Of a DNA stretch of 64,000 nt, positions 10,364 through 63,695 are shown in pieces. The DNA comes from Heteronotia binoei (Eukaryota). The first letter of the stretch is position 1, and each line of letters starts with the position of its first letter. The stretch lies in contig NC_083225.1 in the NCBI RefSeq assembly GCF_032191835.1, positions 54,684,001 to 54,748,000 on the forward strand, in the 5' to 3' direction. Position numbers and translations under genes: made by a program. Below the pieces are notes generated by a model. The model was given only the letters and a program-made list of their open reading frames with translations. It was not told the origin of the DNA and made no database searches.

Positions 10364-10505
10364 NNNNNNNNNNNNNNNNNNNNNNNNNNNNNNNNNNNNN
10401 NNNNNNNNNNNNNNNNNNNNNNNNNNNNNNNNNNNNNNNNNNNNNNNNNNNNNNNNNNNNNNNNNNNNNNNNNNNNNNNNNNNNNNNNNNNNNNNNNNNN
10501 NNNNN
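10364..10505. other. Assembly gap (142 N)
   Basis: N run. Confidence 1.
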
Positions 10506-19122: not shown

Positions 19123-19317
<195 letters not shown>

Positions 19318-20366: not shown

Positions 20367-21274
20367 CAATTTTGTTCTCAAATCCTGTATATACTTCATC
20401 AGTATATGGGATAAGGCACTTTCTCAACTGTGCTGCATAATGCAGCCTATTTATTTTGTCCTGTTTGCTCTGTTGGCTCTATCTGCGCCACCTTCATCAC
20501 TTTCGGGGTGTGGATCCCCCAGTGGGGTGGTCTCCCGACTCCCTCCGCTGGCTGTTTCTGATAGCCCTGCGCCCCCTCTTTCATTTGATATGTGTCCCGT
20601 GCGGGTGCCACCCTCCTGCCGGGAGATGCCGCAAAATGAGCCCCCTTGAGGCTTATGGCGGCAGGGCTCGGGGGAAGCGAGCTAGACTGCTGTTCTTTTG
20701 AGGGGTTATAGAGTGTTTCGAGCCCGTCCCTGTGGCATCGGTCTCATCGTTGTGGGACCCAGGGGGCCGGCGCAGCGGCCCGCCGAAGCAGCCTGTCACT
20801 AATAACACAGGTCGAGATGTAGGACAGGAACCCGGAAGTGACCGACAGGCTGCTTCAGCAGGCCGCTGCGCCGGCCCCCTGGGCCCTACAACGATGGGAC
20901 CGATGCCACAGGGACGGGCTCGAAACACTCTATAACCCCTCAAAAGAACAGCAGTCTAGCTCGCTTCCCCCGAGCCCTGCCGCCATAAGCCTCAAGGGGG
21001 CTCATTTTGCTGCATCTCCCGGTGGGAGGGTGGCACCCGCACGGGACACATATCAAATGAAAGAGGGGGCGCAGGGCTATCAGAAACAGCCAGCGGAGGG
21101 AGTCGGGAGACCACCCCACTGGGGGATCCGCACCCCGAAAGTGATGAAGGTGGCGCAGATAGAGCCAACAGAGCAAACAGGACAAAATAAATAGGCTGCA
21201 TTATGCAGCACAGTTGAGAAAGTGCCTTATCCCATATACTGATTAAGTAAATACAGGATCTGAGAACAAAATTG
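20367..21274. repeat. Long inverted repeat: 431-bp arms, 46-bp spacer
   Basis: 20367-20797 is the near-perfect reverse complement of 20844-21274; the ORF track shows mirror ORFs. Confidence 0.97.
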
Positions 21275-21416
21275 CACCAGAAGACACAAACACAAAGCTC
21301 CCTTACACTGAATCAGTGCTTGGGTCCACCAAAGTCAGTATTGTCCACTCCAGTCACAAACACAAAGCTCCCTTACACTGAATCAGTGCTTGGGTCCACC
21401 AAAGTCAGTATTGTCA

Positions 21417-22440
21417 CATAAGAACATAAGAGAAGCCATGTTGGATCAGGCCAATGGCCCATCCAGTCCAACACTCTGCATCACATAAGAACATAAGAGA
21501 AGCCCTGTTGGATCAGGCCAGTGGCCCATCCAGTCCAACACTCTGCGTCACATAAGAACATAAGAGAAGCCCTGTTGGATCAGGCCAGTGGCCCATCCAG
21601 TCCAACACTCTGCGTCAGATAAGAACATAAGAGAAGCCCTGTTGGATCAGGCCAGTGGCCCATCCAGTCCAACACTCTGCGTCACATAAGAACATAAGAG
21701 AAGCCCTGTTGGATCAGGCCAGTGGCCCATCCAGTCCAACACTCTGCGTCACATAAGAACATAAGAGAAGCCCTGTTGGATCAGGCCAGTGGCCCATCCA
21801 GTCCAACACTCTGCGTCACATAAGAACATAAGAGAAGCCCTGTTGGATCAGGCCAGTGGCCCATCCAGTCCAACACTCTGCATCACATAAGAACATAAGA
21901 GAAGCCCTGTTGGATCAGGCCAGTGGCCCATCCAGTCCAACACTCTGCGTCACATAAGAACATAAGAGAAGCCCTATTGGATCAGGCCAGTGGCCCATCC
22001 AGTCCAACACTCTGCGTCACATAAGAACATAACAGAAGCCCTGTTGTATCAGGCCAGTGGCCCATCCAGTCCAACACTCTGCGTCACATAAGAACATAAG
22101 AGAAGCCCTGTTGTATCAGGGCAGTGGCCCATCCAGTCCAACACTCTGCGTCACATAAGAACATAAGAGAAGCCCTGTTGGATCAGGCCAGTGGCCCATC
22201 CAGTCCAACACTCTGCGTCACATAAGAACATAAGAGAAGCCCTGTTGGATCAGGCCAGTGGCCCATCCAGTCCAACACTCTGCGTCACATAAGAACATAA
22301 GAGAAGCCCTGTTGGATCAGGCCAGTGGCCCATCCAGTCCAACACTCTGCGTCACATAAGAACATAACAGAAGCCCTGTTGGATCAGGCCAGTGGCCCCT
22401 CCAGTCCAACACTCTGCGTCACATAAAAACATAAGAGAAG
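21417..22440 (-). repeat. 67-bp tandem array (15 full copies + partial) derived from the CR1 3' end
   Basis: Exact 67-bp period; the unit's reverse complement matches CR1 4728-4794 at 61/67. Confidence 0.95.
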
Positions 22441-23225
22441 GCTCTGGAAGTCCTTCCGGGACCAGCGCCGGGTGCCCCGCGGCCTCCCCGCGGCCTCCGC
22501 TGGTCCCTGGAGGCCCTCCAGAGTCTCTGGACGGCCTCCAGGGACCAGCGGAGGCCGCGGGGAAGCCTTCGCTGGCAGGCGCTGGTCCCGGAAGGCCTTC
22601 CAGAGGCTCTGGAAGGCCTTCCGGGACCAGCGCCAGGTGCCCCGCGGCCTCCCCGCGGCCTCCGCTGGTCCCTGGAGGCCCTCCAGAGACTCTGGAGGGC
22701 CTCCAGGGACCAGCGGAGGCCGCGGGGAAGCCTTCGCTGGCCGGCACTGGTCCCGGAAGGCCTTCCAGAGGCTCTGGAAGACCTTCCGGGACCAGCGCCG
22801 GGTGCCCCGCGGCCTCCCCGCGGCCTCCGCTGGTCCCTGGAGGCCCTCCAGAGACTTTGGAGGGCCTCCAGGGACCAGCGGAGGCCGCGGGGAGGCCTTC
22901 GCTGGCCGGCGCTGGTCCCGGAAGGCCTTCCAGAGGCTCTGGAAGGCCTTCCGGGACCAGCGCCGGGTGCCCCGCGGCCTCCCCGCGGCCTCCGCTGGTC
23001 CCTGGAGGCCCTCCAGAGACTCTTGAGGGCCTCCAGGGACCAGCGGAGGCCGCGGGGAAGCCTTCGCTGGCCGGCGCTGGTCCCGGAAGGACTTCCAGAG
23101 GCTCTGGAAGGCCTTCCGGGACCAGCGCCGGGTGCCCCGCGGCCTCTCCGCGGCCTCCGCTGGTCACTGGAGGCCCTCCAGAGTCTCTGGAGGGCTTCTA
23201 GCGACTAGCGGAGGCCACGGAGAGG
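22441..23225. repeat. GC-rich 165-bp tandem array (~4.7 copies) built of palindromes
   Basis: Units start at 22441, 22606, 22771, 22936 and 23101. Each has an internal hairpin and one spanning the unit junction. Confidence 0.95.
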
Positions 23226-24897
23226 CCTCCACCACTGCCGCCGGGCCCCGCGTGCGGGCGGGGAAGGCGGCGAGTGAGGGAGGGAGCGTCCCTGCGCGTG
23301 CGCAGGGACGATCCCTCCCTCACTCGCCGCCTTCCCCGCCGGCGCCCGCGGCCCACCGCCTCCGGGGCTGGCTAAACCGGGACCTTTAATGGTCCCGGTA
23401 TAGCAGCCCGGGAGCCGGGATTGGGTGGCCAGAACCGGGAATGTCCCGGGAGACCGGGACGGTCTGGCCACCCTATTTCTTACAGTAAGAGGCAGGGAGA
23501 GAGCTCTTTCTAGGTCTATTTTGGCCTCTCAGTTTAGCCTTGCTCCCCTCCCTCGTACCCTAAGAAAAGGATTCATCAAGGCCAGGGCCAGCAGAAACCA
23601 CCAGGTAACTTGCTGCCATGCAATTTGTGCAACTCATCCAGTGGCTGCCAGATGACTTGATGTCACAGTATTGATCTAGGCCCAGCAGCAGCCTCCATGC
23701 AACTTGCCCAACTTGGCCAGGCCTGGCAGTGGCCACCATGCAACTCACCTGAACAACATGCTATGATACAAGTTTTACAACTTTGCCAAAGTTTTTCTAG
23801 GAAGAGGCTTCCAAAAGGAGAGGAGGAAAAGCTGAGCCACTATGGTGTAGTGATTATAGCATTAGACTAGATCTGAAACATCCAGGTTCAAATCCTTTCT
23901 ATGCCATGGAAGCTCACTGGGTAATCTAGGGCCTTCATGTCTCTCTCTCTCAGCCTCATCTACCTCACAGGTTGTGAGCATAAAATGGAGGACAGGAAAA
24001 TGATGTAAGCTGAAGTGAATAAAAATAAAGCTGAAGAATGTGGGGTAAAAAACATATTGGTGAGTTCATAGGCTAGAAGGAAGCAGGGAAAGAGGAAAGG
24101 ACAGGCTATGGAGGCTGCCGGGAAGACAGAAAGAGGAAACAGTGTGGGGAAGGGGATAAAGAAGGAAAGGAAGTGACCACTGCAAGTCCTTGCAGGTTCC
24201 CACTTGTAAACTACCCAATAAGAACTCTGGGTAGTTTGCATTAATTCAAAACAAAAAAAAAATTGTACCTGTGGTCATGCCCCATAATCAGTGGTGGCTC
24301 AAAAGCAGATGCCCCACTCCGAAAGTTGCCCCCCATCCTCAGCCCATCTCTGTCCCAGTAACCCATGTGTCTTGAAACACAGCACAGTGAGCCGTGCATG
24401 CACAATAAGGCGTCTTTAAAACTGTCACATCTTGTGAAGTGCAAGAATTAAGGTGATGAAGAGGAAAGCCAGTAAGACATAACAAAACAAATGTAACAGA
24501 ACAAAAATGTAGAGGCCCGGTCAAGGCTTGGTGGTGGAATAAAGGGGGGGGGGGGAAATGGCACAATTTAGCTAAACAAACAATACAGACACAAAAGGAA
24601 ACAGAAAAGTAAAAAATATGAATGATTATTATTCTCTTCTGTAAGACAGTCTCTGTGTTACTGAATTGCTTTCTAAAAGCGTTATTGTACCAGAATTATG
24701 CTGGGCAGGCAGCCAGACATTGGAGTGGCAGTGCTGAAAGCGTTAGCATTCAAAGGGGAGTGAAAAAAAGCATAAATGTGATAATAAAAGAGGATAGATG
24801 TGATGATCTGAGTCCTCAGCTGACACTTAGTAGAAGAATGTTTTGCTGTTAACACTTGTCGACCTGATTTGCTAACCCTTTTCTTGCTCTTTTGAAG

Positions 24898-31676: not shown

Positions 31677-32248
31677 AAGAGATTGAATGCACTGTTGCTC
31701 TAGAAATTTCCATCCAATGCGTCTACATGATGGGTTGCAAACAAAGATCTCGTGAACCTTTTCAGCAAACGTGTGAAACTTGCTTCTGTGAGTTGCGTAT
31801 TAGGAAGAAAAACAGGAAGATCTAATGGGGAAATTATTAAATAGGATATTATTCACATTAACTGGATAGGGAAAAACGAGAATATAGCTTTGCCTAAAGC
31901 AATATGAACAAAATCTTGCTTTCCGTAAGTCCCTTTAACCATATCTGACCACATATCAGTATAAAGAGCCTTAATAAGGAACTCCACAAGCATACTTGCA
32001 CATCTGGGTGTACATCTGCATTCTGATTCTTCTCTGAGCCCTATTCAAATAAGGATGTCCTCAGATTTTTTTTAAAGCTAAGTGATAATGACCTTTATTC
32101 TTTGTTCATTTTAAAAATACTATGTAATACTATGTAAAATGTATCTTAAAGCTTTTTAATAAACCTGTTGACTAAGGTGAAGTAAAAATATAAATTCCTG
32201 CCATAGTGGCAAAAAAATAATAATAAATCAGCAGAGATTTCTCACCAT

Positions 32249-33742
32249 TTGTTGTTCAGTTGCACAGTTGAGTCTGACTCTTTGCAACCCCATGGACAGG
32301 CCCTCCTGTCTTCCACCATCCTCCGAAGTCTGCTCAAATTCATGTTTGTTACATCAGTAACGCTGTCCAGCCATCTCATCTTTTGCCATCCCCTTCTTTT
32401 ACCTTCTGTCTTTCCCAGCATCAGGATCTTCTCCAGTGAGTGCTCCCTTCTCATTTGGTGGCCAAAGTATTTGAGCTTCAGCTTCAGCATCTGACTTTCC
32501 AGGGAACAGTCTGGGTTGATTTCCCTTAGGACTGACTGATTTGATCTTCTTGCATTCCAAGGGATTCTAAAGATTCTTCTCCAGCACCAGAGTTCAAAAG
32601 CATCTATTCTTCTGCACTTGGCCTTCCTTATGGTCCAGCTCTCACAGCCATACAATACTACTGGGAATACCATCACTTTGACTATACGGACTTTTGTTGG
32701 CAGGCTGATGTCTCTGCTTTTTATTATACTGCCCAGGTTCGCCATAGCTGTCCTCCCAAGGAGCAAACGTCTTTTAATTTCATGGCTACAGTCACGATCT
32801 GCAGTGATCTTGGATCCCAGAAATGTGAAGTCTGTCACTACTTCCATATCTTCCCCTTCTATTTGCCAAGGTGTGATGGGGCCAGATGCCATGATCTTAG
32901 TTTTTTTGATGTTGAGTTTCAAGCCTACTTTTGTGCTCTCCTCTTTCACCCTCAACAAGAGGTTCTTTAGGTCCTCCTCACTTTCTGCCATTAGAGTGGT
33001 GTCATCTGCATATCTGAGGTTGTTGATGTTTTTCCCAGCAATATTAATTCCGGCTTGTGCTTCATCCAGGCCAGCATTTCGTATGATGTACTCTGCATAT
33101 AAATTAAATAAGCAGGGTGACAATATACATCCTTGTCCTTTTCCTGTTCTAAACCAATCAGTTGTTCCATATCCCGTTCTGACAGTTGCTTCTTGACCCT
33201 TATACAGGTTTCTAAGGAGACATGTGAGGTGGTCTGGTACTCCCATCTTTTTAAGGACTTGCCACAGTTTGTTGTGATCCACACAGTCAAAGGCTTTAGC
33301 GTAGTCAATTAAACAGAAATATATGTTTTTCTGATACTCCCGTGCTTTCTCCATAATCCAGCGAACGTTGGCAATTCGATCTCTAGTTCCTCTACCTCTC
33401 CGAAACCCAGCTTGAACTTCTGTTAGTTCCCAATCTCCATACTGCTAAAGCCTAGCTTGTAGGATCTTTAACATGACCTTGCTGGCATGTGAAATGAGTG
33501 CAATGGTGCGATAGTCTGAACATTACTTGGCATTACCCTTCTTTGGGATTGGAATATAAACCGCTCTTTTCCAATCCTATGGCCACTGTTGCATTTTCCA
33601 GATTTGTTGACATAATGTGTGCATTACTTTAACAGCATCATCTTTTAGGACTTTGAAAAGCTCAATTGGGATACAGTCACCTCCGCTCGCTTTGTTGTTA
33701 GTATTGCTTTCTAAGGCCCATTTGACTTCACACTCCAGAATA
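32249..33742 (-). mobile_element. 5'-truncated RTE-BovB LINE with 8-bp TSD
   Basis: ORF EKAREYQKNIYFCLIDYAKAFDCVDHNKLW...QGCILSP...YADDT; BovB-type 3' end. TSD CTCACCAT at 32241-32248 and 33743-33750. Confidence 0.95.
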
Positions 33743-35795
33743 CTCACCATACTAACCTGAGAAATGGTTCAAACTCATTTTTAACAAGACTCTTTATTTG
33801 AGGGAAACAGTGTGTGTGTGAAAACGGTCCTGCAGAGTAAAAGTATGTTACTGAGTGGATTTAATCCAAAAGGGAAAAAAAGTCTTTGCATCTGTTTTAG
33901 GAGAGAGGTCAAACAGAGGGAAAGCGGGAGGAGGACTCATTCTTACAGCACTAAAAAGCAACTCTAATTCACTGGCTGTCACACAGCAGATGAGTTGTTT
34001 TCATTTGCATATTCAGTGTACCTGGGAAGGTTACAGGATGAGAGTTATGAGGACTCTAAACTCTGTTGTGTTGTCTGGCTCCATACAGAGCAAAGTAGGC
34101 GGGTTACCACAAACCGTTGCTTTGCTTTTTTAATCTCCTAAACAGAGACTGCCATCTAGTGGAGCACAGGGCATTCAACTCACCTAACTTGAATCATCCC
34201 AAGGAAATAAATAGATATCATACATCCCCAAGTAATCTTAAACATATCGGTGTCCACCTTTGAAATTGAATGTTACCATTAAATTAGACTTCCTTAATAC
34301 AACCAACCAGAGCTCATGTCCTGAAAAATATCTGAGGAACAAACAAAACAAAACAAAATTATTTTTAATTAAGCAGTCCGGCAATTTCAGTCAAGAGATT
34401 TTCAAAGACTTCCAGTCAAAGGAGCTCATTGTTAATAAAGATCTTAAAAGAAGGATTTTTTCAGAGCACTAATCTCTTTCTAGGGACCAGACGCTGAAAC
34501 ATGGATGTTCTGCACTTTGAAAAGAAACACTGTGACTGGAAGCATTGATCATAATTTATCCATAGCCAAATCAGCCAGTTAAGATTAGAGATGTGGGAAG
34601 ACTGAGAGATGACAATTAGGAAATGACAGATCAACAGTTAGAGCGGTGGAGGGATGACAGTTAGTAGGCTCAGTTTTCAGAAGAATTATAGTAGATCTCA
34701 GACTGACAGGGAACTCTTAAAGGGAAAACTGTATTCTCAGCTAAGGGCAGCAGAGGAAAATTTAATTTATTGTAGTGGTTCAGCAATTGATGTATCCCTC
34801 CTGCCTCGGTGCAGTGTTTGCCAAGTGTTGCAGCTATCTGGCACTTTGCCACTGAAGAATGTTTGCACACAAATGAAATCATGCTGTAAAAAACTCCTTT
34901 CACCTCAGGCTTGAACACGTACAAATAAATATTTGTTTTTTTTAAAATGAATCCTTTACATCTTGAGCACATATAGGAACATGCTCTGCTCACCATGCAT
35001 AGGCCATTATTTGGCAGGGAACAGAACAGTCTGTTATATTCCTAGGAAAGTCCTGGTAAGACACTCCAAGGGAAAGGATCTACATGGCACGCATGTAGTA
35101 CAAGGGTTCTATCTCACGATATTGTAGCCACAATAAGACCTTAGGATCCTCTTTGTCCACATAGCATTCTGACAGACCTCAGCATTGCTGATAAGGTGAA
35201 GCCCATCCTTACAAATGGCATGATAAATACACTGATCCATTCCCATGGCAATCTACCGCAAATTTATACAACACATTAGGAGAATCAGAGTGACTAAGTA
35301 CATTAAACTACCTGTATGATCATCCCTTGAAAGCATGAAGTTTCCTTGTTAATATAAATATAGTGCTACACCACCAAATTGACCATTTCGGGGTGCACAG
35401 GCTAGGGAAGCCAACCTCCAGGTGGGACCGAGCATCCCCCAGAATTACAGTTCATCTCCAGATTACAGAGATCAGTTCCCCTGGAGAAAATGGATGCTTT
35501 GGAGGATGACTCTATGGCATTGTACACCACTGATGTCCCTGTCCTCCCTAGGCTTCACCCCCCAAATTCCAGGACTTTCCCAGCCTGTAGCTGGCACTGC
35601 TACCCTAGTGCCATGGGTCCACCTCTATTAACTCTTCAACCGGCCCCTTTAGGGTTGGGGACTATTTCCCTTGATGTTAACTCACATATAGGAATAGCTC
35701 CAAATCAGCCACTCTTTGTAGAATAATGCTCAGCAGAGTTTCCATGGAATAGCTCTGAATGTGATGAAAGATCTTGATGAACATATTAAACTTTG

Positions 35796-36031
35796 NNNNN
35801 NNNNNNNNNNNNNNNNNNNNNNNNNNNNNNNNNNNNNNNNNNNNNNNNNNNNNNNNNNNNNNNNNNNNNNNNNNNNNNNNNNNNNNNNNNNNNNNNNNNN
35901 NNNNNNNNNNNNNNNNNNNNNNNNNNNNNNNNNNNNNNNNNNNNNNNNNNNNNNNNNNNNNNNNNNNNNNNNNNNNNNNNNNNNNNNNNNNNNNNNNNNN
36001 NNNNNNNNNNNNNNNNNNNNNNNNNNNNNNN
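35796..36031. other. Assembly gap (236 N)
   Basis: N run. Confidence 1.
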
Positions 36032-36328
36032 AATAGTCACTTGCAAGGTGCACTTGTTTTTGGCTGTGCCACTACCTTTCATAGCCAGTCATGTTTTGCC
36101 AGCTTTTTTCTCTAGGGCTTCCCAAGCTTGCAATATGTGATTGACAGTTGATGACACAAGAATGGGGGAAGGGGGGAGAGAGATATATAAAATGTGTATG
36201 CTATAAGCCCCAGTGGCTCTCCCACTTAAAACTATTGTCTGTCTCCAACTTTTAAAAAATACACGTATAAAATGCTGGAAGGTTTTTCTTTCTTTTATAA
36301 AAAACTTATTAAAAACCTGTCTTTCTAA

Positions 36329-36520
<192 letters not shown>

Positions 36521-38275
36521 TGAACATATTTACTTGTGAAAAAGGTCTAAATAAAGCTGCAAGTTATGGGAAGATGCATGAGGGATGCCAACACAAATCT
36601 CCCAATAATATATGAAATGATATAATTTGGTTAACATTTCCCCAGCCCAGGAAGCAGCAGCCAATGAAATAGACAGGAAAATGCCAATGTGACATTTTGC
36701 CATTTTTTTCACCTATGAGTTACAAGAATGACATGGGTCAGCAGCATCTAGACTTTTCTGCATACCATGGCTGGAACTTACCCTTGTGCCACCTTTGTGA
36801 GCTCTGGGCCTGGGGGTCAGAGCAGTAGAGGACCATGCAACCTCCAGCATTCTGACCTCCCACCCACCCCACTTTTTCAAATCGATGCTGCCACCAGGGC
36901 CTTGGCCCTGTTGTTTCATGGCTTCCCTCCCACCCTCCCTGTGCTTCTGTTTTACAGGTCTTGTTTAATATTTTCTTTGCATTGTTATTGTCACACCTTG
37001 GGAGAGTTTGGGCATTGGGACAGATCATTTTGTGTAGGGAGACAGTGTTGGTGTGCCCACATTCTTGGGACACCCTTAAGGGATCTTGAGGTAGAGCCAA
37101 TTTAGCAACATGCCCAGATCAGGAACTCTCAGTGGGGCTCTCATTACCAAGTGTCAAAAGGACCCATGCAACAGCTGGTGCCCACATGGTCCCACAAGGA
37201 TTGCTACTCATCAGTTGCACCCCCAGCAAGTGGGCTAGGTACATAGATCAGCAAGCAGGTCATCTAATGCAGGATCCATCCCCATTCTGTGCCAGTGTTC
37301 CTGGAGAGTATTCAATAAAGCCATGGCCTTTTTCAGCACAAGGTTCTCAGTAGTCCATTGTATCATTCTTCATCTGTGCCCCTACTTATGCCCTCTGGGC
37401 CCACAAAACCTGTTGTTTTGGCCTACATAACACTATAGATTAGGGGATGGAGTCTATCAAAACATCTGGGTGGCAAAAGATAGCGAAAGGTCATCCCCAA
37501 AAAGGTTATGTGAGGATTGTGGGGTTCACTAACAAAGCAATATGGAATAGAGACTGCAGTGAGGAGGGGAATGGAACACGGAGTGGAAAAGCTAGCTGCA
37601 CCCAGCTGGAGAACACCATACTGTTTTAAGCTGGAGAACACTAGACTGGAATCAGTATCCACCCGAATTCTATTTCCCCTGAAATGAATAAGAATGTGCT
37701 ATCTGCTTTTTCAGTGAAGAATGTTAACAGATGATCTATCATTTGGTTTTCATGTGGGTACCCAGTGGTCCCTCTCTCTGTGGAAGGAAAACATTTCCAG
37801 TCAGGAAAACAGCAATGGGGCAAAGAGGGTTTTTTAGAAAAACACTTTCTGGAGCTGGGAGGAGGACATATCTTGCTTTTTTGCATTTCATAAAATACAT
37901 GTTTGAAGATTCCCAGCCTCGTGTGTAATTTGACTTTCAGTCTGTTGGAAGGCTGCTCCTTTTGTAACTTTCTATTACAGACCTGCCTGGAAGCAGGCAG
38001 CAGTAGATTGAGTATAAAAGTATAAGTGAATGGGAGGGGGGATGAAGATTGCCTTCCAAAGCCCTATTGTAATGCATGGGGAACCACACAAGAGTTCAAC
38101 GTACCATTATAGAGCTCCGATTCATTTCAGTAAGACTGGCGCAGGAGATCTTCCTGCTGGATTCTGCGTGTGATGCAGTTGTTTATCTATAATTGTTAGT
38201 GGTGTATGTGTTTACAATCTTATATCATTGATCCATAGGAACCCTGAGGACATCCCCTTTTATAGACCAGATTGA

Positions 38276-39493: not shown

Positions 39494-40954
39494 GTAAGTC
39501 CATTCTTCCACTGTAATGGCTACATTCATATTCAGCCACTACTTCCAACTGCAGTTTGAACACTGGAAAGTAAAAGTACTTAAACATTTCCTAATTTCCT
39601 CAGAATTGCTTGTATTTAACCATGCAGTTCCAAAGACTGACAGGCACTTCTGTCATCAGAAGGGGGGTGGCAAAATCTGTGGATTCTCCATTCCCACAAC
39701 AGACCCCCATTTTGATGTCATGCTGTTCCTGAATGTCCAGTGATCCCCAGAAACAAAATTTGGGGAGGGCTCAATGGAGAGGAGAGGAGGGAAGATCCTG
39801 TTCTGCAAGCTCTACTCTGCAAACAGTCTCATTGGATACAAGCCAATGTTTGTAACAAGGGCTCTGATCCAGACTACATTATTCATCAGCAGAACAGAAC
39901 TTCTCTGCCCCCCTCTTCCAATAACCGCCCATTGATCCCCTGAGGGAAAGATGAGGAGGAATGGCATCAGGGAGATCTGTAGCGAGAAGGGGGAATTTGT
40001 GCAAAATGCCAGCTGAGACCTGGACCCAACCGTAGAACTGCTTCACAGAACAGCAGCTAAGCATATGTTCAGTACGAAGCTGCAGCAAATCCCAGTCCTC
40101 AAGAAACTGTGTGTGTTTCAAGCAATTATGTGACATTCAAACTTTATATTTTTGTGTGTACACCTGAAGTCACGGGTGTAAAAGGTTAGCTCTAAAATGA
40201 ACTGCACAGAAATGACTTGGTTTACTATTATTTCATTAAGTTGTCCAGAGTGTTTATCATTGTTTCTTCTTTTCTGGTCCCTCTGAGCACCTACAGCTAG
40301 AGAGAAGGGGGGCATTAATTATTCTTCCACCCCAAAACACCTAATCCCTCATTTTGCATAATCATGTTTGCTTATAATTCAAAAGCAAAGAAAAAAATAA
40401 GGAGCAATTGTTTTGATGCAAAGGATAATTAAAGTCCTTCTCGGACAAGGAACAATATAAACTGGCAACAAAAGTCCAGGAATCCCATAGACATACTAAT
40501 GACTAGGAAAATAGCCCAAGAAACAGAAGCTTCTTGAGGTAAGAAGAAAAAAGTACAAGACACTAGTCCTGAATTTTCTCAATAACACTCAGTCAGTCAA
40601 CACTACATGAGATGGTGATTGAATTACATTTTAAGAAAAAATAAAATTTCCACAAATCCTGTCTGAAAAATGATAGAACAGCAACATGGAAAACAGTGGA
40701 ATACAGCAAGCTGGCAAAATATCATCCATATTCTCCATAAAACCTGAGTTAAATTAAATCCATTCCAAGCTAAACAGCCGTTGTAGTCAGACTGTTTTGT
40801 CAGCTTTGCTGTGAGGTCTGTGTTCCACAAAAACACAGGTCTGACCCTTCAAAAGAGCAACCATGCTTGACATCAAGCAGGACACATGATGTGGGCAACA
40901 CTCAGCTGAATGAACCTTTTATATTTTATATTTTTTATAAACTTGGTTTTTCAG

Positions 40955-41169
40955 ATATACAGGAACACCCTCTCCCCTTTCACCCAGCCCTTCTCCTGTG
41001 AGCTCTGTGGGATCGCAAGGAAGCACTGGAACACCTTCTCCGTCGTCCATAATCAGCATCCCACAGCGAATTCATCAGATGGCAGCCAATCACGTTAGCA
41101 TCACCAACAGCATCTTACACAGTTATGACTACTGGGAGATGGCTGACAATCTTGCCAAGGAAAACCAAG
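40955..41169 (+). CDS. AFF3: AFF3 coding exon 10 of window
   Basis: tttcag / GTATGT; [22 protein letters not shown]...[38 protein letters not shown]. Confidence 0.96.
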
Positions 41170-41839
41170 GTATGTGATGATAGTGACTGACTAAAGCTCA
41201 ATAACAACAATATATCCTGTGGTTACAAAAGCACTACAATAACAAATAAAATAAACAATCAAAATATATAGTTATCATAGATATTATAATCACAATATCA
41301 CAATAAAATTAGACAGTTCAAGGTTTTACTCAACATATGAATCTTTCAAAAACAAAGAAATAAGGTTCTTCCTTCCCATTCTCTTAATGTCTACATCATA
41401 CAACAATAGAGGACCACTGATAGCACTTAGGTCTCTTTCCTCATTGGGTACTATAGAAAGTCCAATGATATCAAATAGGAATCTTCTCTTTTGGATGCTG
41501 ATGTGTTTCCTTGATAATCCCCACATTTCGAAGAGGAACCTTCTTCTAAGCAGATTCCACAATTTTAAATCTGTAAAGAATATACAATAAAATACATACA
41601 ATATAGTAAAACCCAGTGCAAAAAGCCTCAAGGTGCCAAAAGCCTCCAAGTACTCACCAACTAACGTCATTATTTCTTTTTAAGTAAATTCCAAAATTTC
41701 AAATCTGTAATAAATATACAATAATTTTAACTAATGACTAAACCATAACACATCCATTTTGATTCACTCTTATGTCTGGCTACTTTATATCCTATGTACT
41801 GATAAAACAGGGCTGGAGTACCACCTGATTCTACCACAT

Positions 41840-42200: not shown

Positions 42201-42869
42201 CCCCTTAATCCTCATGCCCCTCAGAGCATTTACTTTCCAGCAGTGTAGCCAACATACTTGATTACAGACAGGAGACAGGATCATCTGTACAACTTAACTT
42301 AAAGCATGCCCTATATTTGCAACTTGATATATATTTGCTGCTTGTCAATCCTTCTATGCCAAGATAGGAAAACTCCAGTTTTCCAGTAGCTGCATTCTGT
42401 ATATGCATTATTGACATGAAAAAGTATCTGTGTGTAGCCCCAGTCTGGCTGAATTAGTTATGACTTGTTGAAAGCGGGGAACCAGTTAGTCATGATAAAT
42501 TCAAGATTGCTTTCAAATGGGTTAGGCACGTTTAGCTGGACCAGGAGGCCAAAATATCTGAGAACTAGTAACAAGTCATATGGTGAAGTGCTGCCCTGAG
42601 GGCTAGTGTGGGAGCTGACTAGAATGTTGGACTAGGACTGGAGAGATTGTGTTCAGATTGCCACTCAGCCATGAGATTTCGAGCAGTCTCTGTGTCTCAA
42701 CTTTAGTTACCACACAAAAGAAAAAAGGATGTCTCGTTTTAAATATAATTGTATTGTGGAAAAAGTTTGTATTAAAGGTCAGACAAACCTCCTTTAAACC
42801 TTTTAACTGTAATCTAAACTTGGACAACATTCACAATGTATTATAAGCATTTTTTGTTTTATTCCCTAG

Positions 42870-42991
42870 ATTTCTTTAATGATTTGGATGCATTGATGGG
42901 GCCTGTTACCTTGCACAGCAGTATGGAGCACTTGGTCCAATACACACAACAAGGACTTCACTGGATAAGGAGTAGGGCTGAGTTGTCATAG
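42870..42991 (+). CDS. AFF3: AFF3 terminal coding exon (to stop)
   Basis: ccctag acceptor; [40 protein letters not shown] then TAG. Confidence 0.97.
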
Positions 42992-56115: not shown

Positions 56116-56600
56116 AACCATTGGTAATTACCATGGGGGGTCATTCTCTGAGGACTGGAGGACATCTTGGGTCTTTCCCACCATTGTGTCAGGGAGGCAG
56201 GAAATAGAAATCTTTCTTCTTCTTCCTGTGACACCAGAACACCCATCTCCTCAGTTTGGGTAGCTCCGAGAAGCAGTTAAACTAGTAACCTTACTCAGAA
56301 ACAAGGAACAGTAACATTAACAAGAAAAAACTGTAACAAGGGAAAAACAGAGATAACTCTATAAGCAGCGTAGGATAGAGACAGAACAGAAAGGATTAAA
56401 ACAGGTAAGAGTGATGTAAAGCAGTGGGCAAGATGTCCTCCTGTTCTCAGAGAATGACCCCTCATGGTAAGTACCAATAGCCATTCTCCCTCTGAGTCGG
56501 AGGACATCTTGGGTATTCCTAGAGCAGTAGATCAGTGACTGGGCGGGGCATCACTCTCTTCCGCCAACAAGTGCTGCAAAACTTTTCTGCTGAATTGTAG
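56116..56600 (-). mobile_element. DIRS-type (tyrosine recombinase) retroelement 3' terminal fragment
   Basis: On -: FSRKVLQHLL (YR C-terminal GRKVLQ-like), then an ICR-like block. Inverted repeat 56118-56170 vs 56427-56478, with a third GGAGGACATCTTGGG near 56499. Confidence 0.7.
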
Positions 56601-57980
56601 GGTGTTTTTACATTCAGTTTTGAACCAAAGTATTCAAATTGCCTGCCACTGTTACATTTTTACATTTGTGGATTTGCTGCACACATTTTGTGGAGCTAAA
56701 CTTCTGCATTGCAGTTCATACACAGATTGCTGATGTCAGTTACAGGAACTGCAGGTATATGGTTCTGAGACATCACATTTTATCCTGAAGCCTGATTGCT
56801 ACATTCTGCAGATCTTTCCGATGTTCACAGTTTCCTTATTACCCTATGATGTGGATTATTGTGAGCAAAAATTAAACTTTGTGAGACGAGCTGTGATCAG
56901 GGCAGCCAAAATACCATTGCTTAGTACAGGGATGTATACAATTGCTTAAAAATCATCACCATACAAACGCTAGTTAGAATCCAATTTGTTAGTTTCTTTA
57001 AATTGCTTTCTCTGGAAGTATCTTGATTCTTCAGCATTCCAAAGATCAACAGCTACCTGAAGTACCATAGTGTTGTCTCTTTCTGAGGTGCAAGTTTTGT
57101 ATTAATAAATGCTAATTTATAGGCATATGTTCTTGCAGAATTCTTAAAGGATTTAATAGAATTTTTTTTAACTTTCTATAACCCCCCCCCCCCCAAAAAA
57201 AAAAACCCCTACAAACATTTGACCATGCTATTCAGGGAATGCCAAAGCAAAGCAAAATTCCTTACAGTCCATACCCAAAGGTTATTTTCCCACAGCTGAA
57301 ATACTGGAAATGTCTTGATCTTGGGGTGAGGGAAAGGTGAGATGTGGGGAGAAGTTGCAAGCAGAGGAATTGATTTTTCCTTCTTGCTTATTATATTGCA
57401 GCCTCAGGTCCAGATTAGATGGGATGGTATAATCATGGCTGCTGCAAGGCTGCTACTACCACTTCAAAGTCATTCTAAAATGCCACAAAGACCCCAATGC
57501 TGATCATGCCTGCAGCTCAGTGCTCTTGTCTCTACCCACATCTACATACCTTTTCAAGATCCCAAACCACAGTGTGTGTATGCTGCCATTTCAGCACTTG
57601 ATAAGGCATGGTGGGGAGTGAGTGTCTCAGCTGACCATACCAACTTTTAAATGGTGCAGTGTCTTCATGTCTAATTTGGCCCTCAGTTCCCCATATTATG
57701 CATATTTGGGCTAGACTTTCATTTACAAGTTTAGTCTGTTCTTGTCATAGCTTTAGCCAAATAGGGTTTAGAAATACTTCACTTGGGCACATGCAATGTA
57801 ATTTTGCAGCGTAATCTCCTGTCAGGTTGGTTTATGGTTCTGGAAACTACAGTGTTATTAAAATTGAGAGACAGAGAAAGCGAGACTCCTAGTAAGTACT
57901 CTAATTTTCTCCAAAGTGGATAATCGAGTAACTTTTTTCTTATATAGGATTGCATTTTGATCAGTTTTCTTTGTTTTTAG

Positions 57981-58730
57981 AAATAGTCCAGTAAAAAAAT
58001 ACAAAGTGGAGAATGAAATCAAAGCCAATGGAATGAGAAAATTGAACAAGGAATGTGAGACTGGAGAAACAGGATTCCTGGAGGAAGTCTTTCCTTGGAG
58101 TAAACAGAATGGAATTCACCATAGGGACAGCACTGCCATTTTTAATGGACACACTCATCGTTCTAATAGGACCTTAAAGACACCGGATAGCTTGGTGCAC
58201 TCTGACCATAAGGGTGCAACTAGACTGTCTCCAGGCCCTGTGCAGGAGGAGGAAAGGAAAGAGAAATCTGACTTCAGAGGCTGCTCTGTACAGCATTTGC
58301 AACAAAGCAACAAAAATACAGAACTTTTACAGGATCCTCATAGGACTATGAGTAATTCATCTTCATCTCTGCACAGTAATATTAAAATAAATGGTGCTTA
58401 TCATTCCACTGTTCAGAGGCTTTCAAGCACAAAAAGCACTGTTTCAGTATCTGCTCCTAGTCAGGCGGTTTCCTCAATCATGTCCAAATCTTCTAATAGC
58501 AGTTTTATTTCTGACTTTTATTCTCATTCAAGACTTCATCGTATACCTACCTGGAAGTGTGAATGTGCAGAGTTTAACACAACAACAATAAAAGCATTAA
58601 CATAACAAATCATAAAAACTGACCATTACATTGTTGAAAAAATCTGCATAAAGGGAGCGCAACATAAAAAGCAGAAGACATTATTCCAGAAGTTGAAAAC
58701 AATGGTCATGAAACAGCAGTATGCAGGCCA
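57981..58730 (+). pseudogene. REV1: REV1 exon 6 remnant, inverted relative to exons 2-5
   Basis: ttttag|A NSPVKKYKVENEIKANGM...KQNGIHHRDSTAIFNGHT...LHSNIKINGAYHSTVQ...FISDFYSHSRLHRIPTWKCE. Homology breaks near 58580 (TAA at 58603) and resumes weakly (LFQKLKTM ~ IFPGREKLKKM). End approximate. Confidence 0.93.
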
Positions 58731-59326
58731 TAAAACAATCAGCTAAAAATGATGAGACAAAACCACTAAATAATCAAAACTGAAACAGGAGATAACTTTT
58801 GGCTAGGAATATAAATGATAGTAGAGTGTGCTACAGGCACTCTTCCAGAGGGAGGACATTTAAGATTTGAAAAAGTCCCTTTTATATTTAGCACTTACTT
58901 CACTGCTACCTGGCAGTCTTGAGAGGAACGGCTCAATAAGCATGCTGTTCAGCAATTAATTCTAATTGCTTTTTAGCTTCAAAAGATCTACACAGAGGTG
59001 CCTATATACTAACATATTATCACTGTATTGCACTCACAACGTAGCAAGACAGACCTTGACTCCTACACTGGCCCCCCCCAAAAAATGGAATTCAAAGCAT
59101 TAATTTGGAAGACTTTTAAAATAAATTAATCTGAATATACACTTTTTTCAGAATACAGTCTACAAACAGAATTACTAAATAATAATTTCTCTCCTCCTGA
59201 ATGTAAACCCAGGCCAAGAAGTTTCTGAAGACCTGCCCAAACATTATCAACATAAAGTTATCAGAGAACAGCAGAACTGAATAACTGCCAACAGTCTCAA
59301 TGAGAAAATCAAGATCACATACTTAT

Positions 59327-59466
59327 AGCCTGTTGAACTCTGTCCAGAGGTATTGTTAGGATCTGGAATAGAATCTTCTAGTTTGCATGTGGTATTGAAA
59401 CAGAAGCCTTTCTGAATATTTGACGGCTTTGTGTAAAGCTGCAAAAGGAGATGTCCAGCTTTTATG
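59327..59466 (-). pseudogene. REV1: Decayed REV1 exon 5
   Basis: ttttag|(S)IKAGHLLLQLYTKPSNIQKGFCFNTTCKLEDSIPDPNN vs IKAGRLLSYIPYQLYTKQSSVQKGLSFNPVCRPEDPLPGPSN. Four-codon deletion, frameshift near the 3' end, donor ATAAGT. Confidence 0.92.
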
Positions 59467-61472
59467 CTAAAACAAAACATGTTTAGTTTATCAAGGATGC
59501 CAATACTAAAATTTTAATGTATACCTAACTCTGACCTTTATACATCATATGGGGAAAAATGGTCTATGTTCAATAGTAGTCTAATTTTTGGGGAGGGGGG
59601 AGGGCATTCCTTTAACCCTGGTCTAAATTCTGTGCATGGACATAGGACTTCCTCATCTCCCCCCCCCCCCTCACACTGCAACATGAAATGTTTCCCCATG
59701 CTGCTCCTGAGGGATGGACGATTCCCAGGAGCAGCACAAGAGATGAACAGCTGCTGCAACAGGGAGAGAATTAGCAACTATCTTCTTTCCCTTTTGTGTG
59801 TATGGATCTATTCTACATGATCCAATCCATTATGCATTAATTGCTACCTTGTTTCCTTTTTTTCCAGTCACTTCATTTCCTAAGTGATTTTATACATATC
59901 AGTAATACATTTTAAATAAATAATTCAAAATTCTAGGGTAGAGATTCAGAGAGCTGCTTTAGAAGTACCTAAAGGCCTAGGCATATCCAGTTTGCATAAC
60001 AGACTACTCGATGTCACATCTTAGGGCTTTCTGCACGCTCCTGGTTTTCCTGGCAGTCAATCCACAAGCACTGAAATTGGCTTGGGCACAGTTCTGTACA
60101 TCTTCTCTCGCTTTGCACTACTGGAGTCAGCTTATTTTCTTCTGCACATGCCTTCACCAGTGAGGATTTTCAAGGGAAGGAGCTATCATAATTGGAGGCA
60201 TCACAGCACCCCTCCTTTTAAAACAAAGGCAACAAATATTGATCTAGCGCTAGATGGTTGCAACAGGCTCAGCAAGTTCATCGAATTCAATTTTTTCAGA
60301 ATTCAGAGTTCAGAATTCAGCAAGTTCAGCTTTCAGTATTTTAAAACAAAAACATAGGTCTCTAGTCTCCTCCTTTATGGTGAAAAAGAAAAAGACATAT
60401 CTCCACAAGTGAAAATGCTAGACATACTTTTTTCTTCACACAATGAAAGCCAGACATTGAGAACCAGATAAGATTGTTACAAAGCTGCACTGATATCAAT
60501 ATTTCACTGCTGTTTTTTAAAAAGAAAAATTAAACCATCTGTCTTCATGCTGTGCGGGGAGTGGTTTGATTACAACATACCAATAATCAAGAAGTTGCCA
60601 GGAGGTGAGGTGGGTGGGAGGAGAAAGGATAATGAAAGCAATGTAAGTATTATAGAAAACACTGCAATGAAAAGAACAACAGTAAGATCATGTTACCCAA
60701 TTAGAAAAAACAAGAACATTAGCAGTTATGTGATCAGTTTTCTATGGGAATGGTGTAATCAGATCTCTTACAATGGGGACAAGTCCCAATTACACAGAAC
60801 GTTTTCTTGGATCATCCAGTACAATCCAAATATTTCAGTAAAACAACTGCTATATTCTAAGAATGAAAATAATCCAAATACTTTTAACACCTGAAAGTGA
60901 TATAGTAAATAGATTTTCTGGGATAGACTGTGAAACATCCAAAACCACCATTTTACATCAGTTTTAAACTGTCACATTTTAGTTATGTTTTTAAATAGTG
61001 TGTATTACAAAACACATACTCAAAAATATTTCCAAAAAAAATAGACATTGTTTTTAATTTTCAAACCTAAATAAACTATTCAGCACAAACTCAAAAATCA
61101 CATTCAATGCTTATCAGTGAGATTTTGATAATTTTGGCTCATGTACCTCACACCTTACAGTCATAAAATTTACTTTTATCAGCTACCCTGTGAATCAACT
61201 GTCTGAGTTTCCTTGACTGACTGAAGCTGACCTTGCTATTTTAACACACTACCCTTCAGCATTTTACAATCACTTCCCACTAGAGTTCATCAGTACTTTC
61301 TACACAGAACTTTGGGATAGTAAACATTTTCTGTGAGCATAATCACACAGTACTTACCAGAGAGTTAAATATTTGAAAATGTTGTTTTAGCTCTTTTTCA
61401 AAGAAGGCATCAGTTCGCAATCTTATAACCTTTTAATCCTCCTCCTCCTCATCGTGGTTCTCCAGTATTTAC

Positions 61473-61642
61473 CTTCTTTTTTCCATTCTGGTCGAACTAC
61501 TCCCCCCCCCCCCCTTTGAGTCCCTTTACTTTGGCATTTGGAAGATTTTTCACAATGTCCATTGTTTTGGATCTGGAATAACGGACATGACATTGCCCTC
61601 CATGCAACATCGGTCGCCTTCTTAGTTCATCAACTGAAGTAC
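61473..61642 (-). pseudogene. REV1: Decayed REV1 exon 4 (BRCT domain)
   Basis: TSVDELRRRPMLHGGQCHVRYSRSKTMDIVKNLPNAKVKGLK...VVRPEW vs DPSAEELRKLMMLHGGQYHVYYSRSKTTHIIATNLPNAKIKELKGEKVIRPEW. Acceptor AG->AC; G13 run shifts the frame; 170 nt vs 169 expected from the protein alignment. Confidence 0.93.
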
Positions 61643-62074
61643 GTGAAATAGGTTTACAACATTAAAACATGCTGCAGGCTTGAATATGTTCAATATTCTA
61701 TCACAACAGTTGGTTCTTCTCTGATTTTAATAAAATAGCCACTTAGAGTAAATCAGAATTTTAGTTAATGATCTGTCTTTTGACCAATTAATGATATCTA
61801 AATAAATATACATATTTCTAAAATCTCAGAGAAACTTCCCTAAGATATAGTTCAAGGTTCAACTAAAATCAACGACAAGGTTCAAGATAACACTTTTGAA
61901 AAATCTGCTACTGAAACAAAACAATCCGGGTATGTGTACAAAAGTCCCAAGTATGAGATTTTGATACTTGGGACTTTTATATACATACACAAAATGTTTT
62001 GTTTCACTGTGAATATATGAGACATGGTAGTTTTGGGTTTGGACCACAAACCATATAGGGAAAAAAGGAGACTG

Positions 62075-62200
62075 AACATGAACTGATTGTTAAGACTTTA
62101 TTGTGTGACTCTGTATAGTGGCTGGTTTTCTTCTTGTTGACCCCCCTCCCTTTTTTGTTTTTGTTTGCAGTTTTTGTACCTGGGCAGATATATATCCACC
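62075..62200 (-). pseudogene. REV1: Decayed REV1 exon 3
   Basis: ccaag|GGYISAQVQKL vs GGYMAAKVQKL; then degenerates into A/G-rich sequence with a stop. 3' boundary approximate. Confidence 0.75.
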
Positions 62201-62736
62201 CTTGGATTTAAATATAATATACTTTCAGATGTTGAGCAGTTAGTCAATACCCACTTTGTCTATTATGTGTATAATTACAGATGACAAGGTCAAAGGACAT
62301 TACAATCAAAAATTTTAATTTAAAGTACAATACAATACTAATCAGAGTTACTCCCATTTAACTTCAACTCACTTAGAAGGGTGGGACTCCACTCAGAATC
62401 CCAGCACCGTTAATAGATTTAGCTTGGCAAGCCACTTGTACACATCTTTTCAACTGAATAATCACATGAGCATTTTGTAAGCGATTGCTATCCAATTTAA
62501 GCTACTTGGACGGGGGGGGGGGGATACATAGACACAAGATCAACATAGCAGTTTTCCAAGGTAAAGGCAACACAGCACAGCCTTTACTGTATAGATAGCG
62601 CACAGGTGAAAATAAAGCAAGTAAAGAAAATTTCTCTGTTAGATCCACTCATCAATTCCAGGAAAAAGCAGTCAAATTTTTAAAGAATTACATTTGTAAA
62701 CATTTTTTGTCAGAAGATATTTCATGTTGAACCGGC

Positions 62737-62800
62737 CCACGTCCCCCAGCCATCTCTCTCACTGGATCGTTTTCTCCATCCACCTTGCTTCACAAGGAGG
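62737..62800 (-). pseudogene. REV1: Decayed REV1 exon 2 (start exon)
   Basis: (V)KQGGWRKRSSERDGWGTW vs REV1 MRRGGWRKRAENDGWETW. ATG replaced by GTG at 62793; acceptor AG present; donor reads GCCGGT. Confidence 0.88.
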
Positions 62801-62849
62801 CTTTTAATCACGGCGGGGGAAATAAATAAACCAAAATTTAAAAACCAAG

Positions 62850-63480
62850 AACCCCAAAAGAGGCGCGCAGGAGCGCAGGCCTCCGCCTCTCTGACCCGCG
62901 TGTGAGCGAGTTGTGTCCGAAGCGGAGGCTCATCGTGACACCCTCGTTCGTCTTCCGAAACCCTCGCCTAGGGGGCGCCTGACAAGCCGCCGCCGCCTCC
63001 TGTTCCGCAAGGCCCCAGCAGCGCCGCGGGTGCCGGGCGGCAGAACAAGCCTCGGCGCGGCATTGCCGCTCGCCCCGAGGAGAGAATGACGGGAAGCCGC
63101 CGCTACCGCGCATTGTTTGCCCCAGTCCCGGGCGTCGCCGCCGTCTGCCCTGGGGGGCCGGGTGGAAGAGCTTCACGTCGCGACCTCCCGCGCAGTCCCC
63201 GTCGCGCCTGCGGCTCCCGCCGCCGCCACAGCAGTAGCAGTGCCCGCTTCAGCAAATGCCTCGCCTCTCTTCACCTCCTCGCCGCTCCACCTCCGCCGAT
63301 CTTCCCTCCCTCCCTCCAGAACGCAGCCTCGCGCCACCAACCGCCGTTGCCCGCCTCCCTTCTCCTCCCCTCGCTCTGGCCGGCCGGCTTCTGCCCTCAG
63401 GCGGCGCCCTCTGGCGGCGTGCGCCACCAAGGATGTCGCCAACGGCACGAACCGCGGGCAGGAGAGTTGCTTCCGTGTTA
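62850..63480. promoter_or_regulatory. CpG island, probable REV1-derived promoter/non-coding exon 1
   Basis: Very GC- and CpG-rich block with sharp edges, immediately 5' of REV1 exon 2 on the - strand. Confidence 0.8.
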
Positions 63481-63695
63481 TTACACGAACCCACACAAAC
63501 ACACACACAAACCCACAAAACTATTCTACTATCGGGAACCATATTGCTACGAACATTGATTGAATTTCTGGATTAATTATTGGTTTCAGCATAGCATTTA
63601 ATTTGGCCACAGTATGTATTTTCCATATATTCTTATACCAAAGATTAAGGTTTGGACTTTTTTATGTTTTCCCATCAATAGCTATTACGGTTCTA

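Follow-up and report, generated by a model that had tools for sequence, protein, structure and literature searches.

Evidence for an old, unprocessed and rearranged pseudogene of REV1 next to an intact, apparently expressed REV1 gene in Heteronotia binoei

Unprocessed pseudogenes, which arise by segmental duplication, keep the promoter, introns and exon order of their parent, may represent a part of the gene, carry many independent disabling lesions, evolve neutrally and have an intact parent close by on the chromosome. The parent of interest here, REV1, is a Y-family deoxycytidyl transferase and a scaffold for translesion synthesis (TLS), and in human it stands in the gene order AFF3 > REV1 > < EIF5B. 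We report the analysis of a stretch of 64,000 nucleotides from Heteronotia binoei (assembly GCF_032191835.1, contig NC_083225.1, abbreviated C3; the whole stretch, C3:54684001-54748000, is referred to as the window), in which positions 56966-63520 hold the remnants of a REV1 promoter and of REV1 exons 1-6, with a likeness to the gene that is far beyond chance. This segment is very probably an old, unprocessed and rearranged REV1 pseudogene that lies beside the intact REV1.

The window copy shares with other unprocessed pseudogenes all of the features given above, and differs from them in that the block with exon 6 is inverted relative to exons 1-5, in that it has been re-amplified to four copies and in that a single exon has diverged much less than the others. 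When set beside REV1 itself, the remnants represent its promoter and N-terminus, its BRCT exon and its large exon with the N-digit (SRLH) region at the end; unlike the gene, the window copy has no start codon, a frameshifted BRCT exon and no exons for the IMS, UBM or C-terminal domains.

For this analysis the window was lengthened by 180 kb downstream, and the positions of the lengthened stretch, marked 'ext' (genome coordinate - 54684000), carry on the numbering of the window. The REV1 reference was a protein of 1252 amino acids (P0002), recognised as REV1 by its Pfam domains BRCT, IMS, IMS_C, UBM and REV1_C and giving 1036 bits with PDB entry 3gqc ("DNA repair protein REV1"); it was used as the tblastn query. 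Lesions were read from base-by-base alignment of each remnant to the intact downstream REV1. Raw RNA reads, from unstranded libraries, were mapped to window 57700-63600 at 90% likeness.

The reference protein finds exon 6 at window 57991-58584 (+; amino acids 171-371, E 9e-38), exon 5 at 59468-59313 (-; amino acids 116-171, E 7e-7) and exon 4 at 61637-61533 (-; amino acids 62-97, E 6e-7). A previous, sequence-only reading of the window had described remnants of exons 2 to 6, each with a disabling lesion, and tblastn together with the base-by-base alignment bears out all five, in place and in kind (Table 1). The premature stop that it noted in exon 6 is present, though its cause is a different one from point mutation: the stop follows because the homology ends at an inversion junction. 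The lesions of exon 4 are common to all four copies of this exon in the genome; the length of its poly-G run differs among the copies and the resulting frameshift may be in part a homopolymer error, while the remaining lesions are independent of the run. Reference amino acids 372-1252, which include the IMS catalytic core, the UBMs and the C-terminal domain, have no tblastn match in any of the pseudogene copies or elsewhere in the window, in agreement with the earlier remark that the catalytic Y-family exons could not be found in the window. A start codon, usable splice sites and an open frame are all wanting in the window copy which, as judged from its sequence, is unable to encode a REV1 protein and would never have contained the polymerase domain.

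Table 1. Features of the REV1 pseudogene and of its surroundings ('ext' marks positions in the numbering of the lengthened stretch; '/' marks an exon border).
Feature	Position	Strand	Remarks
Exon 1 and promoter remnant	window 62850-63480	-	CpG island; 75% identity to intact promoter, ext 112993-113494 (blastn)
Exon 2 remnant	window 62737-62802	-	ATG>GTG at 62791-62793; donor GTATGT replaced by GCCGGT
Exon 3 remnant	window 62165-62200	-	first 36 nt alone left (GGYISAQVQKL); homology stops after these
Dispersed repeat adjoining the end of exon 3 homology	window 61955-62121	.	>30 copies on many contigs, 69-89% identity
Exon 4 (BRCT) remnant	window 61473-61642	-	acceptor CAG>CAC; indels -3, poly-G +5, -1
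Exon 5 remnant	window 59327-59466	-	acceptor kept; 12-nt in-frame deletion; +2 frameshift; donor GTAAGT>ATAAGT
Exon 6 remnant	window 57981-58575	+	acceptor kept; 198 open codons; breakpoint at 58575; stop 58603-58605
Block B: end of intron 5 and exon 6 remnant	window 56966-58575	+	matches ext 140321-142334, same orientation (blastn)
B/A junction, ~10 nt, inversion (fold-back type)	window 58576-58585	.	100% identical in mirror copy, ext 73540-73640
Block A: promoter, exons 1-5 and part of intron 5	window 58586-63520	-	matches ext 112757-139537 in reverse (blastn)
Left arm of young palindrome	window 38042 to ext 64934	.	mirror arm ext 67258-90941; holds whole pseudogene and last two AFF3 coding exons
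Exon with donor AAG/GTGAGT, in palindrome centres only	ext 65147-65178, 66636-66667 (L011); 95837-95868, 97324-97355 (L015)	+	
AFF-family CHD (C-terminal homology domain) exons upstream (AFF3 by synteny)	window 19180-19317, 36338-36439, 40944-41177, 42869-42982	+	Pfam AFF4_CHD

Two blocks of opposite orientation, A and B, make up the copy. The blastn blocks extend over the parent promoter and introns 2-5, and block A is without large parts of introns 1 and 4. Since introns and promoter have been kept, the copy is classed as an unprocessed pseudogene; a processed (retrotransposed) pseudogene was ruled out by the same features and by the position of the copy, which adjoins its parent. A truncated paralogue consisting of the BRCT region only was also ruled out, there being no start codon and the BRCT exon being frameshifted.

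The sequence-only reading had offered two possibilities, that of a dead and partial duplicate whose intact REV1 would lie nearby or elsewhere and that of the remains of the only copy, and had proposed a tblastn search with REV1, a look beyond 64 kb for a plus-strand REV1 and for EIF5B, and a check of RNA for the full-length message. The search with P0002 places an intact gene on the same contig, at C3:54812826-54856305 (ext 128826-172305, + strand), about 65 kb downstream of the window, so that the first of these possibilities is the one that holds. A splice-aware model of this gene consists of 22 coding exons, joined throughout by GT-AG introns, and encodes 1250 amino acids without an internal stop; along its whole length it is identical to P0002 at 892 of 1252 positions (71%). 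The tblastn matches at ext 129398-172299 (+) run in order from amino acid 14 to 1251, the pseudogene copies giving only amino acids 62-371, and the single piece missing from the series was located at ext 154140-154247. When 21 full-length homologues are compared, 197 columns are conserved to 90% or more; the model retains 191 of these and has conservative replacements in the other six, and the catalytic motifs HVDMDCFF, SCDEA and SRLH are present. In its sequence, the downstream locus has the features expected of a functional REV1: a complete frame, BRCT, catalytic core, C-terminal domain and the conserved residues.

The same conclusion is reached from a 600-bp stretch of exon 6, which has three copies on C3, namely that in the window, an inverted copy of 100% identity 15 kb further on and a copy of 95% identity at C3:54825740 (+). 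Exons matching Pfam IMS, the Y-family catalytic domain, come after the last of these, and IMS matches are found at the downstream locus only. When the whole genome was searched with the Pfam families REV1_C, IMS_C and UBM, the REV1 locus itself was not among the matches; this reflects the limited sensitivity of searching exons one by one, and tblastn did find these parts. An exon with an IF-2 domain lies on the - strand, 11 kb beyond the REV1 stop, and identifies an EIF5B-like gene, the second of the landmarks looked for beyond the window. With the AFF-family exons upstream (Table 1), the downstream REV1 thus stands between AFF3 and an EIF5B-like gene, which fits the expectation from synteny. 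As a separate observation, the genome-wide UBM matches are solely at G000:C13:12560903-12563247 (-), probably the gene for DNA polymerase iota.

Intact REV1 also appears to be expressed, as judged from its exons 1-3 and exon 6 in RNA. Three RNA runs hold 75-81% of the sequence words of intact exon 6; for the 5,500-bp pseudogene stretch only runs X1 and X2 are listed, with 9-12% of its words. Reads showing a joint between 62804 and 63125 of the window have loose ends that match ext 113166-113195 exactly, followed by AAAG/GTGAGA, which is the exon 1>2 splice of the intact gene, and one RNA contig runs from exon 2 into intact exon 3, with an exact match to ext 129411-129430. At position 58280 the letter of the intact gene is found in six of six reads, and three reads run on past 58575, where they agree with the continuation of the intact exon at all but 3 of 26 nt (a noisy consensus). 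The proposed RNA check is in this way answered in part: the junctions from exon 1 to 2 and from 2 to 3 and the reads from exon 6 are there, and a message from end to end was not seen.

The divergence of the copy from its parent is uneven. Block A differs by substitutions at 16-18% of sites and the intron part of block B at 11-13%; for exon 6 the figure is 4.9%, so that it is three to four times less diverged than the rest. When exon 6 (57981-58575) is aligned to the intact gene (L003:1501-2095) there are 29 differences in 594 nt and no indel, 24 of them non-synonymous and five synonymous, giving a synonymous divergence (dS) of 0.04 and a ratio of non-synonymous to synonymous divergence (dN/dS) of 1.26; the other exons carry indels. 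The coding remnants evolve neutrally. Purifying selection was considered for the low divergence of exon 6 and ruled out because dS is also low and dN/dS is about 1.3. The pattern suggests that the functional REV1, which is oriented like block B, has acted as donor in a gene conversion, or that block B is of younger origin. For the copy as a whole, some 0.18-0.20 substitutions per site between copy and parent point to an event that is probably old, of the order of tens of millions of years.

A second and younger layer of duplication surrounds the pseudogene. Self-alignment reveals a palindrome with arms of about 27 kb that are 98.5-99.1% identical, separated by a 2.3-kb centre with a 1.5-kb tandem duplication; the left arm holds the whole pseudogene (Table 1). 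The palindrome core, ext 61443-71049, is repeated 30 kb on, at ext 91830-101745, with 97-98.6% identity. Genome-wide, there are consequently four copies of the 5' part of the pseudogene, all in the AFF3-REV1 cluster, and two copies of the part with exons 5 and 6, and the lesions are shared by all copies. No homology was found between the palindrome centre and the intact REV1 locus. The last two coding exons of AFF3 (CHD 149-262) at window 40944-41177 and 42869-42982 (+) are mirrored at ext 85947-86060 and 87814-88044 (-), 45 kb downstream of the originals. Large near-identical palindromes are known from ampliconic regions of sex chromosomes, where arm-to-arm gene conversion keeps the arms alike. 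Likened on sequence alone, the present structure resembles these in its inverted arms of about 27 kb and 99% identity, its short non-palindromic spacer and its core duplicated once again, and differs in its content, which is a pseudogene and the 3' end of AFF3 and not testis gene families. The difference of about 1% between the arms would imply either a recent event or ongoing conversion from arm to arm.

The promoter remnant in the window has kept the character of a CpG island, with a G+C fraction of 0.71, an observed/expected ratio of 1.03 and 79 CpGs. RNA depth peaks over 62.0-63.4 kb, including non-exonic stretches that are about 82% like the intact gene, and some other bins have zero reads. 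At the site of the start codon (position 62793), 6 of 19 RNA reads have the pseudogene letter (GTG), which confirms this lesion in other animals. There are many sites at which all RNA reads differ from all four assembled copies, often with the letter of the intact gene, which we infer to be the ancestral state; the animals that gave the RNA seem to have orthologous copies of the pseudogene, which differ from those of the assembly by about 1%. Pseudogene-type copies in the RNA of other animals lend independent support to the existence of the copy.

Splicing of pseudogene transcripts is also seen. Nine reads join the exon at ext 65147-65178 (+) through its donor AAG/GTGAGT to a cryptic acceptor in pseudo-exon 4. 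In another three, the end of pseudo-exon 5, at 59327, is spliced to window 56196-56225 (-), with the acceptor at 56225. The latter splice, window 59327>56225, either has an AT-AG intron, as in the assembly, or uses an intact GT donor in the copy of the RNA animals. The CpG-island promoters of the pseudogene thus appear to be still active, giving rise to low-level, partly spliced non-coding RNA.

A history that would account for these observations begins with the local copying, long ago, of a genomic segment that took in the REV1 promoter, with some sequence ahead of it, and ended midway through exon 6. The copy would have come to lie after AFF3 and before the real REV1; its exon 6 piece would have been inverted and much of its intron sequence lost, and the fold-back type of the junction may reflect an origin in replication or template switching. 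The region that precedes the intact promoter, at ext 104-107 kb, has old paralogues at window 49.2-55.6 kb, which suggests that the first duplication was larger than the gene fragment and was then further rearranged. Neutral decay may then have removed the start codon, three splice signals and most of exon 3 and introduced several frameshifts. Much later, a block of about 27 kb with the pseudogene and the last two AFF3 exons would have been duplicated head-to-head into the palindrome, the core of which would have been copied once more, so that the 5' part is now present four times and the part with exons 5 and 6 twice.

How well a rearranged pseudogene explains the locus can be judged against the other readings that the data allow. 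The more striking possibility raised by the sequence-only reading, that these decayed remnants are all that is left of REV1 and that a vertebrate has lost this translesion polymerase, agrees with the disabling of every remnant and with a 64-kb window empty of catalytic exons; faced with an intact gene of 22 exons and 1250 amino acids 65 kb downstream, spliced in RNA over exons 1-3 and followed by the EIF5B-like gene, it is refuted. A scrambled order and multiple copies might also be the work of the assembly, through a fold-back chimeric read or falsely duplicated haplotigs: the structure is seen only there, some stretches are 100% identical between the arms and homopolymer runs vary between copies. 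The copy differs by 16-18% from the real REV1, however, and so is not a misplaced duplicate, and arms about 1% different, with a third copy at 2-3% and with indels, are unlike a duplicated read. RNA reads of other animals carry pseudogene-type letters, the GTG start among them; the exon of the palindrome centres, which exists on the + strand only, is joined in spliced reads to pseudo-exon 4 in its REV1-sense strand, for which a + oriented copy is required; and the last two exons of AFF3 require the left arm. An artefact of this kind is very unlikely.

Whether the copy has been kept for a function is a different question, in that a gene for a spliced non-coding RNA could be under the control of its CpG-island promoters and might converge on the 3' end of AFF3. 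The CpG island has been fully kept at about 17% divergence, the RNA over 62.0-63.4 kb includes non-exonic sequence specific to the pseudogene, and there are the nine and the three spliced reads; against this, RNA depth is very low, junction reads are few, the library strand is uninformative, and transcription from a leftover promoter, which is common in duplicated pseudogenes, is no proof of function. We consider a retained function unlikely. Quite improbable is the further reading that the nested palindromes form a lineage-specific regulatory RNA locus for AFF3 or REV1 and are not inert debris; all four of the retained REV1-type promoters would then be active, and pseudo-exons and new exons would be spliced into non-coding transcripts that, in the left arm, run toward the AFF3 3' end. 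Some observations do weigh against the rearranged pseudogene beside a working gene. The RNA comes from animals about 1% different from the assembly, and therefore from other individuals or a very close relative; its coverage of the intact REV1 consists of exons 1-3 and exon 6, short of a full-length transcript; the abrupt fall in divergence at exon 6 is only partly accounted for, conversion tracts having no need to follow exon borders; and for the palindromes and the B/A inversion junction the assembly is the one direct source, to which RNA adds indirect support.

The locus is an ordinary duplicated pseudogene within an unusual local amplification. With REV1 intact, and expressed as far as RNA covers it, the idea of a vertebrate without it is removed, and the case illustrates that the view from a single window may take a local partial duplicate for the gene itself. 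The interval between AFF3 and REV1 contains four REV1-like 5' fragments with live-looking CpG islands as well as a duplicated AFF3 3' end, any of which could lead to errors when genes are predicted, reads mapped or promoters called. Our search of the literature for a REV1 pseudogene next to AFF3 found nothing relevant.

Other features of the window are of a minor kind. An old inverted partial copy relates window 31819-36671 to 56115-51477, with 79-85% identity, and takes in AFF3 intron sequence and the CHD exon at 36338-36439. Two runs of N are left in the window, at 10364-10505 (142 nt) and 35796-36031 (236 nt), and a GC-rich block at 20367-23228 is composed of tandem and inverted repeat modules in a 67-bp register, with 94-98% identity.

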